Assembly (NCBI GenBank): GCA_020536535.1 | Contig: JAHLWZ010000158.1 | Span: 1 to 64,000 of the forward strand | Origin: Pelomyxa schiedti | Lineage: Eukaryota; Protista; Evosea | Direction of reading: 5' to 3' | DNA length: 64,000 nt | Part shown: in pieces, positions 6,085 through 42,531 of the stretch | Position numbering within the stretch: the first letter of the stretch is position 1 | Layout: each line of letters opens with the position of its first letter | Notes under the pieces: model-generated | The model's database searches: none | What the model was told of the DNA's origin: nothing | Seen by the model: the letters and a program-made list of their open reading frames with translations, nothing else | Made by a program: the position numbers and the translations under genes

Positions 6085-6184
6085 NNNNNNNNNNNNNNNN
6101 NNNNNNNNNNNNNNNNNNNNNNNNNNNNNNNNNNNNNNNNNNNNNNNNNNNNNNNNNNNNNNNNNNNNNNNNNNNNNNNNNNNN
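6085..6184. other. Assembly gap (100 N)
   Basis: Run of N. Confidence 1.
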
Positions 6185-19255: not shown

Positions 19256-21346
19256 ATGGACGAACGAAGCAGCGCGTGCGCAGCCTCCGAGGGCCTCCCA
19301 AATAGCCACCACAGTGGTGACACCCGAAACGCGGTGGTGCACTCGAATTATGGGGCTGCTGATGCTGCTGCTTCTTCTCCTCCTCCTCCGCCTCTTTCTC
19401 CTGCCCAAAGCCCCCCTGCACTGAGCACAAACGAAATGAAACTCTACAGGAGCCAAGGGACTGAGGACCCTGAGCACGAGTTTGACAAATATCCCGTGGG
19501 CAATAACCTTCCTGGGTCACTTGACCAACCCTTGCATCAAAGAAGTACCTACCATCTTTTTTCCAATTCCTCAAATTAAAGTGGCGTTTCACTGACTGAC
19601 TGACCTACCCAACAAATCACATAACAATTAAACAAACAAACTCATTTTTTAACTGTGTGGTGGGGAAACCCTCACAGGTTGGTTTGACAAATTCAAGGAC
19701 ATGTTGTTTTGGAGTTCACCTACAGCCTCACTGCTCCCTGTGATTGATAACACAGTCAGAGAAGGGGAACCCCTTCTATCTGACACAACTGTGCGCCATG
19801 CACCTCGCCGCATAATTTTGTATCGCTTTTTGGCGGCCTGCATTTGTATGGCACTCACGATAGGCATGTCTAAAATCCAAAATAAAAAAAAAATACAAAA
19901 TACTGGACTGCCTCGTTATGTGTCTTAACATGTGAAATAGCACCTTGGGTAGTTCTTGCATTCATCATACAGGACGATATCCAGGACAACAACGAAAATC
20001 CATACTTTGTGTATGCACTGTTTTCCCACTTTGGCGATAAAAACAACCACCGCGCTGACCACTGTTTCTACAGAACCTGGTTTGTGAGGTCAATGCTATC
20101 ATGGATGACAATAGTTTGGGCGATCTGGTATTTCATAAGAGGGAAGAAGATGCTACGATTAAAACACCAGTTTACCTGGAAGAGATACCTGCTTTCTGCA
20201 TTTCTTATGTCCTTTATCATGTTTTTCAGCGCGCTTATGTGGTATGCCAGCCTGTCAGGAATTAGTGTTTCGGGTTCAACTGCTGGTAGATTTGGTTGTC
20301 AAGTCAGCACAACTAAGTTTCTTATTTAGTGTCTGCGTGCACACCAGTCTTTGTATATATATTTGTATGGACACAATACCTCCAGATTCTTTCTTATTCT
20401 TCATAGGCAGTACCCATACTGAAAGAGAGAATTGTGGCTACGAAACTGCTAGCTACTGTCCTATGTGTTGCTGGTGCCTTGATTGTAGCTCTTACTGGTA
20501 GGTAACTTATTTTTTTTTTTGGATGAATGACTTCCCAAAGCTGTGTCCACTAACGGAAGTGGAAGTTCCGGTGAGTACGTGCAAGACACTCCACTTGGCT
20601 ATATTGAAGTGTTTATCAACACTATACTGTGGTCTCTATTTCTGGTATAATCTCGCCACGCAACTCTATATTTGATGGATATTATGAAGGTTTTGTACCA
20701 GCGATTTGGTGTGGATCATATATTCGAAACTGAACCAACGATAGAGAGAATGATTTTTTATCCTTTCTTATTTGTTGGTGTCTGTGGCCTTATAATGTTT
20801 GGTCTTATGTGGGTCGGTATACCGGTAAAACTCTCCCCCAACCATGTTTGATCCAACAATCGATAGATTCTTTATCTTATCAAAGGGTCTGATACTTTTG
20901 CCTGGCCTTCCTGGAATACGGTGCGGGATTTAATTGGAAGCGCCATTCTATCAGTTTTTGGGGAGATGTACACTTATGTACTTCTCTGTAAACCTCCCTG
21001 ATCACTGTCTAGTACCACTCTCGTTGGCATAGCGTGCTCCTCGGCACTATTCATTTCTATTGGTTCGATATTGGCGTATGTGTTTTATCTTATGTAGACC
21101 ACGCCATACACACCCTCTTCCTAGATTACCCATATCTTCCATATCCGAAGTATACGCATACCACTATCATTTTCCAGGTAAAGCAATCCACACCCGCAAT
21201 TCGCCGAGTTCCTCATTCTTTTCCTAGCATGGTCTTATATTGGTATTGTTCTAGTTGTTGTTGGAACAGGGATTCTGTACCTCGACCAAATCAAAGTAAT
21301 ATGGCTATTCTACAAAAACAGAGCCTACCAACCTGTATGCAATTGA
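19256..21346 (+). CDS. DMT/EamA-type transporter (SLC35F-like)
   Basis: Multi-exon with many hydrophobic helices; ENPYF, WYASLSGISVSGSTA and ILKERIVATKLLATVLCVAG motifs. One probable GC-AG intron at 19864-19940. Confidence 0.7.
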
Positions 21347-21479
21347 TTGTGGCCAAACCCCACAACAAGTCCCAATAGAAAACAAAAATTCAGTACCCCA
21401 AACAACCCGAAAACAAAGATGATCTCAGATTGGAAAAACCCAAGTTGTCCCTTGTTGTTTCATTTCTGCGAAGAAGAAA

Positions 21480-23613: not shown

Positions 23614-25035
23614 TTAAGATCCATGTTGGTTCTCAAGTACACTACGGATGATGATGTCGGTAACAGCCTCAAACACGGCAGTCACGCTCTTGGTGTCGGT
23701 GGCACATGTAATATGTGCATACAAAGGTTTCTTCTGGTTTTCCACCAGAGAGAAGAATTTATCCCGGATGAAGTTAGCAGCAGTCTCCCAGTTGGGTCCA
23801 CCTTTTTGCATTAGTTAGAACAAGGTAACATAGAATCAAGGTAACAGCTTGGAATCAACCATTGTAATCGGGGAATGTTGCTTCAAGGGGGCTCTTCAGA
23901 ATTTTTTTTTGGAATAGGTCACTCTTGTTAAGGAACAAGAGGAATGGGGTCGATCCGAACCACTTATTGTTGGTAGTCTCCTTGAATAGTCTCAAGGATT
24001 CCGTCATTCTATTGGTGACACCATCTTCGTATCTGATAAATTGGTAAACAAAGCAAAAAAAAAGCAAGGCCTATTACAGTTTCAGGTCATATTCACTGAG
24101 AGCAATAACAAAAACTACTGCAGTTACATCATCAAAACAATTCATCCATTTTTTCCTTTCACTTCGTTGGCCTCCAACATCAACAACTCTTTGTCAAATG
24201 GTGAACACCTCACAAGGCTTGAAGGAGTTGATTACCTAAACCGCGTGTTTCGGTATACAAAATCTATTTCATTTACACCACTAGTTTTCACTCTGCTAGC
24301 TAGCACATCATCTACAGATGGCACATAAGCAGGTTGAGAAATTCTGTCAATGTTTTCAAAAAAGCTAGACTGTGTCACAGAAGAGAAGACAAACTAATAA
24401 CAATAACAGAAGCAACATACTATGCAGCACAATCAAATAACTGGAATTCGTTCCTCCTTTCATATGCTGCTCTGATGCCTGGGTCCGTCCAAAGAGTCTT
24501 TTTCCCGTTGTATTTAATAAGACTAGCACAAGAAAGTGTTTATTGGGATGAATTATACCTTGATTGCCGCAGCAACATCAGGAGTATATGGCTCATGAAG
24601 AATTTCATATTCTGGCCTCTTCACAATCTCTGCTTGTGCCTGGAAAAAGTTGGAGAAGCACACGAGTCGTATGATATACCGTGGCGGCAATAGGAACCCC
24701 AAAATCGCCAGCAGCTCGAACAAGGTTGCGCATACTCCCCAAGGCATTGTTGAGAATCGCCAGCTTATATGCATTACGTTCTTCAGTAGTGAAACCGTCC
24801 AAATGAATAAGCTTCAATTGTTTGGCTATTGTGCTTTTTCCAGATTCCCCAGCCCCTTCATGCAAGTCATAAAAAAAAAAACGAGAAGACAACAATGAAA
24901 CAAACAAAACACTCGATCCCTACCCAACAACAAGAGCTTGATTGTTTGGTTCCTGTCGTTTCTAGTCTTTTCATCGTGGAGTGCCTTGTCAATTTCCAGA
25001 GTTCGTTTTGCTTCCACACTTTGACCACAACCCAT
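23614..25035 (-). CDS. Heterotrimeric G-protein alpha subunit
   Basis: MGCGQS (myristoyl/palmitoyl-type N-terminus), [44 protein letters not shown]; canonical introns. Confidence 0.95.
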
Positions 25036-25322
25036 CTACGTGTGTCGTTTTCTCGTTTGTGTCGTCTTTACCAACCCCGCACGTGCTGCCCCCTGCCGCT
25101 TTTTCTCGTATTTTTTTTGTTTTGTGTACACACAGGTTTATTTTTCTCTTTTCCACATGCAGGGAAGTTAATGCTGTCAGTTTATGGAAATCAGACTAAA
25201 ACATCCAGATCGCAGAATGATAGAACGTTAGATTAACCAAAAGTTTCTTTCGAGTTTTTGTTTCCCAAACTGGGTTAATAGGTTGGCGATAGAGTCACTG
25301 ATGTTGGTTTTGGTTGAGGGAT

Positions 25323-36500: not shown

Positions 36501-38480
36501 CTGCACCAGATTTAAAATCGTTGCTTTTTTCCCCAGGTTAGACAGAGTTTCTTATTATTTCCTTACAACAACCCAGTTCAATTTCTTCCAAAATTGTTTG
36601 TTCTCTTGAGGGTGTGCAAACCTTTGGCCTTTTTCTCTCTTACCGTGGCCAGGACATTTCAAGCTCTTTAGAGCCACAAGACGCAGATTATCCTTCTCTT
36701 AACTCTGCCCTCAATAAGACTGGCCTTCTACTTACAAGAATAAATGAAAACTTCCAGGTTTGCAGTTGACTTCGTATTCTTTTTAACTGTCTTCAGTTCG
36801 TGAATCCCTTAGATATTTTGAACTGTACATCTGATGAATCTGGCCAATTACAGTCAGTGAATAAATTATCAATAAGGTGTAACACACATTAGGATAATGG
36901 GAGCCACCTTAGAGGGCCTTGTTGACAAGCTGACCCACCACAATATCACAGGTAGATAATCTTTAAAAGCAGTTTTCCTTTACGTTCGACAGATCCAGGA
37001 TTCCGGGAGGTGTTTTTGCTCACTTTCCGCACTTTCACCACTCCTACTATACTCATGAAGATGCTCATAGAAAAGTAATTTTCATTGCTGATTACCTTAT
37101 TGACTATAATAACTTTTACTGGTAGAGCCAAGACCTCTGGTTCCATTTGGACTCCTAAACAACGGTGTGCATCCCTGTTTGAATATCTTTGCTCACCTTC
37201 CTAAGCATATATCATGTCCTTGACTCCTGGGTTGTAACCCATTTTTACGATTTCGTCAAAGACAAAGAAGTATTGGCGCTGCTTACCGAGTTCCTGGAGG
37301 ATACTGATGTCGTGGAAGAAAATGAAACAAATTTCAAGCAACATTTGCGGACTTTGATAACACAATTGCAGGTTCCTGCTTTTTTGCACTCATTCAGTGG
37401 CGTCACGTTGACTTTTAACTCTCAACGTACAGAATGACAATTCCAGCTCTGACAACGAGCCACCAGAACTTCCTGTAACTACCCCTGGATTCGACTTTGC
37501 TGCAATTTCTCCGGAGGAGGTAATTGGACAAATGTATTTCTTTACATTTACTTTCCCAAGGTTGCCTGTGGCCTGGCCCTTATAAGTCATGAACTTTTTT
37601 CACGTATCGGTGTTCAAGAATTCTTTGGAAAAGCATGGGAAAAATCCGATGCTGCACAACGTTGCCCAAATTTGCTGACCTTTACGGCTCGTTTCAATAT
37701 GGTTGTTCTCAAATCTTGCTTTGGTGAAACTAAGCTCCTCAGATGTCATCCTGGTCATCAACTGAAATTACAAGTCGCTCCAACAAGAACCTTCAGGTCT
37801 CCGAGCTTTGTCACATGCTAGACATTGCATCTGTAGACTTCCAGTTAGAAATCATAACATAACTAACTCTTCTTCAGCAATGTGAAAAACTCAACGATTA
37901 CTATTCTCTCACTGCAATCATTTACGGGCTCCTTTCAATTTCTGATAAATTCCGGAAACAAGTAATTTCTCCCACACTTGACACAACACTTACGAATTCC
38001 AACAGATCCCTAAGGAGCATTTAGCCCTGCTTGAGCGTATGGAGGAGTTAGTATCACCATTACGCAACTACAAAAACATGAGACAAAAAGTACAGGCCAC
38101 AAAGCCACCATGTGTACCATTTTTGGGTATGTCGAGGGTGTCAACATTTAGTACTAAGTCTGTTTGCAGCACTCACAATCAAAGACCTCACTTTCATTGA
38201 AGGTAACAAACCAAACTTTCTCTAAACTGTCCCAACTTCCCAAATCAGATGGAAACCAGGATTACATAAGGGAAGACCTCAAAGTTATCAACTTTTTCAA
38301 GCGTCGCAAGGTATCAGAAGTAATTCTGCCCATCCGGCAATACCAACAAATCAAGTACACTTGACCATATGTGTTTGCACTGCCTTTAACACCTCTAAAA
38401 GATACTCAAACATAGAGGAACCAGACTCAAATGTAATGGCCTACTTACGAATATTGAATTCTCATGCAAAAAAATCTTGA
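33580..38480 (+). CDS. RCC1-repeat + DH-like + REM + CDC25 RasGEF protein
   Basis: RCC1: GANVNGRLGLG, VSCGAYNT, VALGTYH, VACGDSH. DH C-terminus: DLKSLLFSPVQ...DADYPSLNSAL...INEN. REM: GATLEGLVDKLT...DPGFREVFLLTFRTF. CDC25: PPCVPFL...DLTFIE...INFFKRR. Confidence 0.85.
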
Positions 38481-38538
38481 TAAAAGTAGTGTATCCCCGC
38501 ACTTTATTTGGTCAAAAATGGTGTGCCGTACTAGCACA

Positions 38539-41500
38539 TCACAGCCCTTGTAAAAATGCAAAATATTTTTGTAGCACAGCCGCAGTGATTGGAGGGCTGA
38601 GGCCAGCCACTTTCTGTGTGTTGTCACTCTGAACCGTTTCTTGTTCCTTTGTTGAATCAAATGGCAGAAGCACAAGTGGTTGTCCAGTCCCATTTCCTTC
38701 TTCTTCCTGTTGCTGACTGTTGTTGTCCCTTGTGCTGTGGTGGTGGGCCAACAGAGGCCACAGGGCACAGTCTTCACAACACGAAACGGCACGGCACCAT
38801 TGGTGGTATGATGAGGATATGGCACAGGGTGTGAGTTGCTGGGGTGAATTTGCCTCTGTTGGTGATATAGAAGAAGCTGCAGAGGCCAGGGTGGACAATG
38901 ACACGGCTGGGCCTACAAAGTGGAACGACTGGTACTGGGATTGGCGGGGCCTGCTGGGTGATTCTTCAGCGTCCCGGGTCGTTGTGGTTGTGGCGGTTGT
39001 TTCTTGTTCTGGCTCCGCATTGGATTCAGACTCGATAAGCGGAGGAGTGTTATTTGCATTTGTTGTCATGTAATCGGGAAGAGCGGCCAATAAGCAACCC
39101 TGAGCGACCCAGTCCACTGGCGCCATGGATGTAAATACAGCTTCGCAATCGGCTCCAGAGGGAGGTGGTATCTTGCCTTTCAAATGCAGTAAGGTAGCTA
39201 AAAGTCTATTCACGGAATCAGAAGGGTTAAGAGCCCCTGTTTGTGTACTGCCGGCAATAGTCCCAGGTCTAATAACTAAGGGGAAAGGTTATTTCTTAAA
39301 GTGCTGAAATTTGTACCTACCAACCACGTTCATTCCTAGCCTGAATGCTTCGAGTAGCATCATTTCAGCTATCCGCTTTGATCTGGAGTATGGATCCATT
39401 TCAGATAAGGATACTCGTCCCAGTTGAAAGTCCTCTGGTATTGGTCCATTGGCTGTTTCATCACGGTGGAATACAGAGATAGAAGATATGTACACTAGCC
39501 TTTTTGGGCAACCTTTACAGCAAATTCGTATTGCTTCCAGGGTACCGTTTACATTTGGTTGTCGAATCTGGTTATAGGTAAGTGCACTCGATGTGGAGGC
39601 TGCACTATGTATCACTAGGCTGGTTCTTTCAGTAACTTCAACCCATTCCTCACGTGGAAGACCCATCTTGTTTTGGGAAATGTCTCCGGGAACGCAGTGT
39701 ATACGTGAAAACAGTTCCTCCTCTAAACTTACCCTATATTTTGCAAGACTATTTTTCAAAACATCGATTGCAGTGGAGTTACAGGGAACCCTCACTAGGC
39801 ACCAAACATCACAGTTTGTGAGCAAGAGAATTTGTTGCAGAATATGTGCTCCAAGAAGGCCAGTTCCACCAGTAAGGAATATACCTCCGTTTCCTTCATA
39901 GTCTGAATTGTTGACTATCCCAGACTTAATTTTGGATGGAAGTTCCCACTCCAAATCCCATCCAAAGGGGCTGGGAGGTTGTTCAGTTGCTATCATACCT
40001 GGATGGTGTCGCCCTTTTCTTGTGGCATCCACTACACTGCGAAGCGTAGGACCAAGCCCATTTTGGCCAATAAGAGCATGTGGTTCAACACGAACACCAA
40101 GCGCTTTAGAAAGGGCGGCAGAGAGCTTGATTGCACGAATACTGTCCACACCAACACTGGAAAGTGGTGCATCCACATCTGCCTTCCCTTCGTTTATGTG
40201 GAAATTAGCCATAAAAATCTGCCGTGCCAACTCCAAATCACCACTGATATCATCTGTATCTTTTGGAACTGCCAATGGGATATCCACAAATTCTTCTGCA
40301 AGCTTCTCACATTCAGACCCAAATCTCGCAGACAGGGCATGTCTATTGACTTTCATGCTTGGTGTGAGGTAGTTGTGCTTGGTCCAGTCCTCTGTATTGA
40401 GAATGACGGTGTGGGGAATTTCATGGGGTTGAAGCCTATGGGCCTCAGCTATGGCACAGACCTCCTCTCTAATGAGTTGTACCAGCTCATTGGACTGGCC
40501 TATAAGTTGTATTTTAGACTCCAGTGAATCTGGAATCTGTGCAGTAAGTGCACCTCTACTGAAAGCTCTTGAAAGCAGAACGTCAATATTCGGGACAACA
40601 ACAGCAGCAACGCAGGTCATCAAACCACTTGCATAAATAAAGATATTAGAAACTAATGGTGATGCCGAGTACAGCTGCTGCAAGTATTCAGGCGCCACCC
40701 AGATGCTCTGAGAAAGTTTTATGGCAAAACCAGTGCGGTCAATTATTTTAATTCTCCTAGTAGATTGATCATATTCAACAATATCTCCAGTGCAAAAATA
40801 GCCATCAGGGGAAAATTTGTCATTAGTGGCACTTTCATCAGTATAGTAACCTGCAGCCATATCATCTGTTTTCACCCACAACACACCTCGGGGAGGAACA
40901 TCGGTCGAGAAATACCCAAGATTAGGGCAGTCTTGCAGCCGGACATTCACACCAGGTTTTACTTTTCCATTTTTTGCTATATTTCCGGCTTCAGTTGTGC
41001 CATATCCTTCAGTAACTTCACACTGAGAGAAACACTTTCTCAGCCATTCCACTAAATGTGGGGGTGTTAGAGCACCACCAACAGAGATTCCATCAACACG
41101 ACTCCCGAGCGAAGTACCGTAGTCTTGTAAAAGTCTTTCTTCTACTTGCTCGTATCTATCTGGGAGTGTGGCCAACTTGAGTTTATCTAAGTCAGATATA
41201 AATTTGGAATACAGAACATTCCAAATCACTGGGGGGGCTTGCAGGAATGTAGGCTCAAGTTTTTTCACTTCTTCAAAGAAGTTGCCCATGTTTCCGGTAG
41301 AAAACCCCAGTCTCCCTCCGCCAGCCAGAACTGCTATCATTCTGTGGTATTGCGAGCTGTAGGGCAAGGGCATGTAAATAAGTTCCACATTTAATGCACT
41401 GGGATATACAAATACAATCTCTTTATTGAACACATGGCTTGGAATTGCTGCCGCTTTTGGAGACCCCGAACTCCCAGACGTATAAAGAAGTGCACATACA

Positions 41501-42531
41501 GCTTCAGGGTCATCTTCAATTACAGGTCTCCATGTTGAAGAGGCCTTGTACCTGTTTTGAATGTCCGACCACAAGAACTGTTCACAGGTTTGAATCGGAT
41601 CAGGAGGAATTGCTTGCGGTGTGCTGGAGGGATCGGGCATAATAACCAGTAATTTGATACCATTGCATTGGATGTACGGCACAACAAACTTGGAAAGAGA
41701 TACCGAACAGAAAACAATGGTGGAACCAGAGTGATGCAGAATCTCCGGCAAAGCAGAAGTGGGAGAATTCCCCGATAGAGCGATCGGCACAAAGACCGCA
41801 CCAGAGAAAATGCATGCAAAATTCGCTATGCACCACAGGGGACTGTTGGGAGCCAAAATCACAGCTTTCACCCTCCCCTGCCTCTCAAAGGCCGCACGCT
41901 CGCCTCCTATTTTTTCCACCAGGAAGCTTCCCAGTGCCCTGGACTGCCTATAGACATCATCATACAGCATCCAGTCATACCCCTGCACCACGGCCCCATC
42001 GCCGCCGTCGCCACCGCAGTTGCAACTTGAAACAGGCAAGTTCCGGCTCAAAACAGGGGTTCCAAACAGTGGCCTGTGCCTGTACTTGAGCAGCCGGGAG
42101 CACAGGGAGCGAGCAAGTGACTGGTGTACGGCATGCCGGGCACCCACAACTGACGGAATGAGCTCCAATGCACAATGACTAATGTCTCCCACATTCACAT
42201 TATGGGTGTGGCTCTGAGCGGGACCGGCGAGGCAGTGTGCGTCCCAAACAGAAGGAGAGGCCCAGCAGGATCCACACAGGTCGTAGCTGACATTGGACCT
42301 CGCAGAGCATGTGGCACAGTGATACCTCGCCGCGTCATTGTCTATATTGTTTCTGTTTTTGAGAGTCAAATGCCAAAACAAAAAAAAAAGGATGGGGAGT
42401 TGCTGTTTTCACTCTTACTTGCAACCGTCACAGCGATACAACGCAGAAGTTCCCCTCTCAGCTGCTGAGAATTTGGAAGTGAACAGATCGCAATTTGGAG
42501 GTGGCGAGAGGCACCTTACGGTCCTCATCAT
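38539..42531 (-). CDS. ZZ zinc finger - adenylation - carrier (T) - thioester reductase; carboxylic acid reductase/NRPS-like enzyme
   Basis: Exon 1 from ATG 42531, intron 42418-42353, gives CDGC...RYHCATC...YDLCGSC...H...H. A domain: YTSGSSGSPK, EGYGTTEAG, LGYFSTDVPPRG, GYFCTGD. T domain: GVDS. R domain: LTGGTGLLG, HSAA, PNVNGT, YSRSK, then IRPGTIAG after a short intron near 39320-39276. Confidence 0.9.

Follow-up and report, generated by a model that had tools for sequence, protein, structure and literature searches.

How did an enzyme resembling carboxylic acid reductases (CARs) come to be joined to a ZZ zinc finger in an anaerobic amoeba, and what would such a protein do? The question is raised by a minus-strand gene at 42531-38539 of the first 64,000 nucleotides (hereafter the window) of contig JAHLWZ010000158.1 (C158) from the Pelomyxa schiedti assembly GCA_020536535.1. 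A first-pass annotation had described its product as a CAR-like protein in which an N-terminal ZZ finger precedes adenylation, carrier and thioester reductase domains (A-T-R), and had proposed that the reductase was probably acquired horizontally and placed under eukaryotic control. The domain assignments held, with Pfam matches, six invariant Cys residues and a ZZ fold model behind them. As to origin, we consider it likely that the gene encodes a ZZ-A-T-R protein, from one of approximately 18-20 related loci in this genome, which belongs to an old protist family of CAR-like proteins and, by analogy, carries out a CAR-type reaction.

Reading the exons from the DNA, with frame checks, gave three exons and a product of 1293 amino acids (Table 1). 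An open reading frame (ORF) of 1030 amino acids at 39289-42381 (minus strand) contains the Pfam AMP-binding, PP-binding and NAD_binding_4 domains and is 98% identical to the NCBI protein P0001, a 1278-amino-acid entry named "fattyacid-CoA ligase [Pelomyxa schiedti]". The joined model is identical to P0001 except for 15 residues, and the two share the same start position. Homology searches were run with single exons or with P0001; the joined exons were used solely for the frame check and for the comparison with P0001. RNA contigs from two single-cell libraries of one study (runs X1 and X2) matched 38402-40894 at full identity while skipping exactly 39276-39320, which establishes that the gene is transcribed and that intron 2 is real. 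The gene is thus a genuine, expressed nuclear gene of P. schiedti.

The removal of the 66-nucleotide intron 1 keeps the frame and completes the C-x2-C ... C-x2-C ... C-x2-C pattern with its His residues. An intron at the ZZ codon immediately after the second Cys, in phase 2, is common to the C158 gene, its paralogue on contig C795 and L001, a homologue of 38% identity from a eukaryotic contig of a metagenome that also shares the position of intron 2. This shared position provides strong, if indirect, support for intron 1. The ZZ finger is contiguous with the adenylation domain in the paralogues on contigs C798 and C22, as well as in transcriptome-derived proteins of other amoebae.

All three domains of the A-T-R core lie in a single polypeptide, in the order AMP-binding, PP-binding and NAD_binding_4. 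The motifs YTSGSSGSPK, GYGTTE, TGD, the A10 Lys, GVDS, TGGTGLLG and YSRSK could be read directly in the 1293-residue model, and their columns, which take in the carrier Ser, Rossmann motif and YxxxK named in the first-pass annotation, are all invariant in an alignment of 53 family sequences. That alignment has 21 invariant columns, every one of which is kept in the C158 protein; they include the A3 Ser/Gly, E464, D533 and K677 (ORF numbering), the carrier Ser (Ser775), the Rossmann glycines and the reductase Tyr and Lys (Y1026 and K1030). The ANL core motifs A3, A5, A7 and A8 (IIDR...KL) and the A10 Lys, K705, are present, with the Gly-Glu of A8 changed. A segment singled out earlier for its CAR-like pattern likewise matches the family consensus KLxDVPELGYxxTDxPxPRGELxVK. 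For the reductase, PF07993 (NAD_binding_4) matched P0001 over its full length with 160.7 bits; TIGR01746, run on exon 2 by itself, gave 148.9 bits, and its failure to reach the 213-bit cut-off is explained by intron 2, which splits the domain.

Among curated families, the best NCBIfam match was carboxylic acid reductase NF041592 (EC 1.2.1.30), with 296.8 bits over residues 175-1012 against a curated cut-off of 1300 bits that the C158 protein does not reach. The best matching structures in the PDB were the bacterial CARs 5msc, 5mso and 5msp (E 1e-59 to 1e-54), aligned in a single stretch from residue 283 to 1015. Mutagenesis of the Neurospora crassa enzyme NcCAR has defined five essential residues, namely His237 of the PxxH motif (H300 in NiCAR), Glu433 of the LSxGE motif, the carrier Ser (S595) and the reductase Tyr (Y844) and Lys (K848), and the substitutions H237A and E433A each abolished activity (PMC5826065). 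The last three have counterparts in the C158 protein; the His and Glu are replaced by Tyr369 and Ile588, so that the earlier description of a complete A-T-R module stands for domains and motifs and falls short at these two positions. With a score of 297 against 1300 bits and this pair replaced, the protein appears from its sequence to be CAR-like in architecture and probable mechanism, and to lie outside the CAR family proper.

The likely function, judged by analogy with CARs, as are the reaction, cofactors, product and substrate class, is to use ATP and NAD(P)H to reduce an acid bound to the carrier, yielding an aldehyde or alcohol. In such a scheme, an Sfp-type phosphopantetheinyl transferase (PPTase) would first attach phosphopantetheine to Ser775. 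The adenylation domain would then adenylate a carboxylic acid with ATP and load it as a thioester on the carrier, from which the reductase domain would release it with NAD(P)H as an aldehyde, or as an alcohol after a second reduction. A search for an Sfp-type PPTase, suggested in the first-pass annotation, yielded a candidate of the Sfp/AASDHPPT type on contig C561, with Pfam ACPS matches of 35.6 and 37.8 bits and an ORF containing FNFNVSHHG and VGVDVM. The two matches, at 21307-21441 and 24953-25231 (L010 and L011), are 3.6 kb apart and have an identical stretch in common to each side of a run of N; they are probably one gene duplicated by the assembly gap.

The ZZ finger is borderline by profile. 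Pfam ZZ (PF00569) scored 22.8-23.0 bits (E 7e-5) on the N-terminus alone, against a gathering cut-off of 21.4, and 20.8 bits, below that cut-off, on the whole protein. Across the family, all six Cys residues are invariant in the 37 N-termini aligned, 29 of which have a Pfam ZZ match. An AlphaFold model of residues 26-125 reached a predicted local distance difference test (pLDDT) score of approximately 91 over the ZZ core, and its best Foldseek matches in the PDB were exclusively ZZ domains (Ada2, CBP/p300, HERC2, BIG, p62 and PRT1), with probabilities of 0.98-1.00 and E-values of 0.04-0.1 that are expected to be weak for a finger of some 50 residues. The His pair is present; an insertion that the C158 paralogue carries before it, where model confidence is lower, leaves the assignment of the zinc-binding His residues uncertain. 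By alignment and model, the N-terminal ZZ finger appears genuine. It sits approximately 60 residues ahead of a conserved N-terminal motif of the adenylation domain (RHRPLFG in the C158 protein) and, judging from its spread through the family, looks to be an ancestral part of it as opposed to a local graft.

Whether the finger reads a ligand is a separate matter. Structurally, it comes closest to ZZ domains that bind N-termini, and one may suppose that, in the manner of those of p62, p300, HERC2 and PRT1, it docks onto the free N-terminus of a partner protein or a peptide, by which the reductase would be targeted or regulated, beyond a capping of the adenylation domain. The acidic triad with which p62 holds the N-terminal residue is D129, D147 and D149; in the C158 protein the equivalents of D129 and D149 are present and that of D147 is Ser. 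The residue after the first ZZ Cys is Asp in 15 of the 37 family members and Asn in nine, which gives Asp or Asn in 24, and an Asp precedes the Leu-Cys in 26. These positions are, however, features of the general ZZ consensus, none is invariant in the family, and the insertion falls in the region of the His ligands. Predicted docking of the ZZ finger (26-100) against the adenylation domain (100-720) with zinc scored 0.00, which gave no verdict and is evidence neither way. We regard such a ligand-reading role as possible but doubtful. The argument for a p62-type degron site, made from the Asp residues of CDGC and YDLC, is correct in that both are present, but weak.

The replaced His and Glu raise the question of what the adenylation domain does. 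The His of PxxH occurs in 36 of the 53 family members and the Glu of LSxGE in 43, with His and Gly-Glu together in 33; the two changes are correlated and mainly confined to the Archamoebae subclade that contains C158. At the His and Gly-Glu positions, respectively, this protein has Tyr and Ser-Ile, L001 has Tyr and Ser-Val, C795 has Phe and Ser-Leu, C530 has Tyr and Ala-Val, the Mastigamoeba protein has Tyr and Gly-Cys, and C798 has Gln and Gly-Gln. The replacing residues are in turn conserved, YSSQ being identical in the C158 protein and the homologue P0002, which argues for a remodelled site still under selection and against decay. As the CAR pair is Tyr/Ile in the subclade, the acid, or the way in which it is held, probably differs from that of the studied CARs. 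A bolder proposal is that the Archamoebae subclade are not CARs in the known sense and have diversified onto new acids or loading modes, with the ZZ finger recognising a free amino terminus, whether on a partner protein or on a substrate that bears an amine. The conserved Tyr/aliphatic pair in place of His/Glu and the roughly 20 Pelomyxa copies make such diversification conceivable; as a whole we think this proposal unlikely.

It is rather improbable, in our estimation, that the adenylation domain no longer adenylates free acids at all, leaving either a reductase that receives its acyl chains in trans, for instance from a synthase, or a scaffold of reduced catalytic capacity. Such a loss would fit the inactivity of the H237A and E433A variants of NcCAR (PMC5826065), given that both positions are changed throughout the subclade, and the resemblance of the reductase domain alone to terminal reductases of polyketide synthases and nonribosomal peptide synthetases. 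Set against it are the intact A3, A5, A7 and A10 Lys motifs and the conservation of the replacement residues. Moreover, there are other ANL enzymes that function with an aromatic side chain in place of the His and lack the Glu.

The protein is one member of a large family. Approximately 18-20 paralogous loci in the P. schiedti genome carry adenylation and reductase domains of the C158 type, and at least seven (C158, C795, C798, C530, C852, C22 and C292) have a ZZ-type N-terminus. Besides C158, the loci are found on contigs C795, C798, C530, C852, C22, C292, C1068, C889, C816, C822, C648, C1009, C406, C1016, C929, C564, C885 and C928 (L009 and L012-L028). Word-based protein searches gave few relatives, and those described here came from an exhaustive profile search and from a query with the Tieghemostelium protein. 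The profile search, over 1.84 billion representatives, gave 1625 matches at E 1e-30 or better, and a ZZ pattern was present in 38 of 159 proteins, chiefly the 150 best of those matches. The nearest relatives are eukaryotic. Among Archamoebae they comprise the Pelomyxa paralogues and Mastigamoeba (P0014); among dictyostelids, D. discoideum (P0195), D. purpureum, other Dictyostelium, Heterostelium, Cavenderia, Polysphondylium, Acytostelium and Tieghemostelium (P0042), all annotated as hypothetical proteins; and among other Amoebozoa, Cavostelium, Clastostelium, Stenamoeba, Rhizamoeba and Balamuthia. Outside Amoebozoa, members were identified in the metamonads Anaeramoeba ignava and A. flamelloides (P0058 and P0084) and the stramenopile Platysulcus (P0067 and P0074). 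The architecture is thus widespread in protists; full-text searches found no paper on a ZZ finger fused to a CAR or an A-T-R enzyme and nothing pertinent on CARs in Dictyostelium or amoebae, which is not proof of absence, and the Pelomyxa genome paper does not discuss the C158 ZZ-A-T-R gene. Four metagenome relatives (P0191, P0207, P0208 and P0213) have a Ras/Roc-type small GTPase domain (PF00071, PF08477) fused to AMP-binding and NAD_binding_4, a further N-terminal fusion to this core that looks regulatory.

Bacterial CARs for comparison were reached via a Streptomyces synthase query followed by genome searches; a pattern search of bacterial genomes with patterns drawn from a two-sequence alignment found nothing, the patterns chosen being family-specific. 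In both a FastTree analysis of 131 rows and a quick IQ-TREE analysis of 45 rows under LG+C20, every row that is eukaryotic or bears a ZZ finger falls into a single clade, which has support of 100 and a long stem. Within it, C158 joins C795 and L001 first (100), next Mastigamoeba and C798 (98-99), and after these the C530 group (99). The CARs of actinobacteria and the metagenomic P0147 and P0125, whose bacterial gene neighbourhoods were checked, fall outside. By this placement, Archamoebae had the gene before Pelomyxa and Mastigamoeba parted. Judging from the sequences, the A-T-R core and bacterial CARs go back to a common ancestor, and any transfer between domains of life predates that split; an ancient bacterial origin is plausible, though the present trees, with their arbitrary root, thin sampling and biased composition, cannot show it.

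These results largely refute the recent horizontal acquisition first proposed, in which a bacterial CAR entered Pelomyxa, gained a eukaryotic ZZ exon and came under p62-like N-degron control. Among characterised proteins the A-T-R core is indeed closest to bacterial CARs, exon 2 is an uninterrupted block of 3 kb, and both CDGC and YDLC are present. Against this, the closest relatives belong to eukaryotes and make up a single clade, some of the 18-20 paralogues are rich in introns, and both C795 and the 38%-identical L001 have the same intron within the ZZ finger; for p62-like control, the Asp after the first Cys is a minority state and the D147 equivalent is Ser. The lack of introns in the core, offered as a hint of transfer, holds for exon 2 of this gene and is no trait of the family, as intron number varies widely among paralogues, from C530, which aligned as a single block, to C852, which aligned as at least six. 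We therefore consider a recent transfer very improbable. That the gene is contaminant bacterial DNA or a prediction artefact has next to no probability: the assembly does derive from single cells carrying bacterial symbionts (PMC8887013, PMC10579272), but a DNA run carries the same locus and the spliced RNA contigs, from which a spliceosomal intron has been removed, rule this out.

Several points weigh against an old protist family of CAR-like enzymes as the explanation for the C158 gene. Adenylation of a free acid is not assured, since the His and Glu essential in NcCAR are absent. Taken alone, the reductase domain matched the polyketide/peptide-type terminal reductase MxaA (PDB 4u7w; E 1e-30) above the reductase domains of CARs, because of which sequence cannot decide between an aldehyde and an alcohol product. 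The joint of exons 1 and 2 has no RNA evidence, there being no RNA contig over 40992-42575. The trees come from quick and FastTree searches rooted arbitrarily on actinobacterial CARs, with many composition-biased rows, and within the eukaryotic clade, beside Balamuthia, is nested P0054 (L122, GCA_030430565.1), an A-T-R homologue with an unannotated N-terminus of approximately 300 residues that lies among bacterial-type genes; its placement could reflect a eukaryote-to-bacterium transfer or a binning error.

Some details of the gene model deserve mention (Table 1). The third intron of the NCBI model, which removes 15 residues, is most likely a prediction error and the stretch coding, because these residues are conserved in P0002 and an RNA contig (X1 record 4) extends 25 nucleotides into it. 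At position 41995 of the window, within a Gly-Gly-Asp repeat of the N-terminal part of the adenylation domain, a contig from a DNA run has 12 extra bases, CCATCGCCGCCG, a length variant or an assembly difference. The C-terminal part encoded by exon 3 contains Thr-rich and Gln/Glu-rich low-complexity inserts that are absent from L001, and the protein ends in QGL, with no SKL-type peroxisomal targeting signal at this C-terminus. At 38402-38602, RNA contigs that begin below 38402 and have higher depth extend over the stop codon, and represent either a long 3' untranslated region or the end of a convergent neighbouring transcript. Elsewhere in the window, two runs of 100 N at 545-644 and 6085-6184 mark assembly gaps.

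Table 1. Features of the ZZ-A-T-R gene, in window coordinates.
Feature	Coordinates	Strand	Remarks
Exon 1	42419..42531	-	Start codon and first C-x2-C of the ZZ finger (CDGC, residues 34-37); ends in phase 2, TGC AA|GT
Intron 1	42353..42418	-	66 nucleotides, GTAAGA...AACAG, in-frame stop inside; interrupts the ZZ finger
Exon 2	39321..42352	-	3032 nucleotides; remaining ZZ finger, adenylation domain, carrier domain and most of the reductase domain
Intron 2	39276..39320	-	45 nucleotides, GTAGGT...CTTAG, phase 1; joint 39275/39321 in RNA of X1 and X2
Exon 3	38539..39275	-	End of the reductase domain and C-terminal part; stop codon 38541-38539; RNA-covered
ZZ zinc finger (spans intron 1)	42202..42432	-	C34, C37, C50, C53, C64, C67; candidate His ligands H77, H86/H88
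Adenylation (ANL) domain	40342..42000	-	Pfam AMP-binding, E 2e-38; from Pfam start to A10 Lys (K705)
PLPY, equivalent to the PxxH motif of CARs	41359..41370	-	Tyr369 in place of the essential His
LSQSIW, equivalent to the LSxGE(F) hinge motif of CARs	40699..40716	-	Ser587-Ile588 in place of Gly-Glu
Disputed stretch, most likely coding	40628..40672	-	45 nucleotides spliced out as an intron in NCBI model P0001, dropping the 15 residues YSASPLVSNIFIYAS
Carrier (PP-binding) domain	40063..40221	-	Pfam PP-binding; phosphopantetheine Ser775 in GVDS (40152-40141)
Thioester reductase domain (NAD_binding_4; spans intron 2)	39100..39876	-	TGGTGLLG, Y1026/K1030, GALNPSD

CARs are sought-after biocatalysts, and those studied are bacterial or fungal. 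The data presented here document a separate and widespread protist clade with a constant additional ZZ module, in one subclade of which a pair of active-site residues held to be essential is replaced, and this unstudied family includes a member in the tractable model D. discoideum. Two corrections follow: the C158 gene offers no evidence for recent import of a bacterial gene into Pelomyxa, and the public gene model drops 15 conserved residues as a false intron. That an anaerobic amoeba has some 20 copies hints that it may possess an aldehyde, alcohol or lipid metabolism as yet unexplored. Were the subclade to use new substrates and its ZZ finger to read N-termini, this would be an as yet undescribed link between a finger for protein recognition and chemistry that forms aldehydes.

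Compared with known systems, the C158 protein shares with the bacterial CARs of Nocardia, Mycobacterium and Segniliparus and with FadD9 the A-T-R order and the A3, A5, A7, A10, carrier Ser, Rossmann and Tyr/Lys motifs, at 28-31% identity to Nocardia and other actinobacterial CARs. It differs from them in its ZZ finger, where they have a non-ZZ N-terminal extension, in its low-complexity C-terminal inserts, and in the long branch of the eukaryotic clade. Fungal NcCAR has the same reaction architecture and the same essential Ser, Tyr and Lys, whereas equivalents of its His237 and Glu433 are not conserved in the C158 protein, which has the A10 Lys where fungal CARs have a hydroxylic residue (PMC5826065). 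MxaA carries its reductase at the end of a synthetase assembly line, whereas that of C158 follows a single adenylation domain resembling fatty-acyl ligases. The ZZ domains of p62/SQSTM1, CBP/p300, HERC2, Ada2, PRT1 and BIG have the same predicted fold and zinc-ligand pattern; the C158 finger is set apart by its fusion to a metabolic enzyme, its partly kept acidic ligand-contact residues and the insertion before its His ligands. The closest counterparts are the ZZ-A-T-R proteins of dictyostelids, Mastigamoeba, Anaeramoeba and Platysulcus, which share the four-domain architecture and the clade at 25-38% identity to the C158 protein and, unlike it, mostly keep the canonical His and Gly-Glu.

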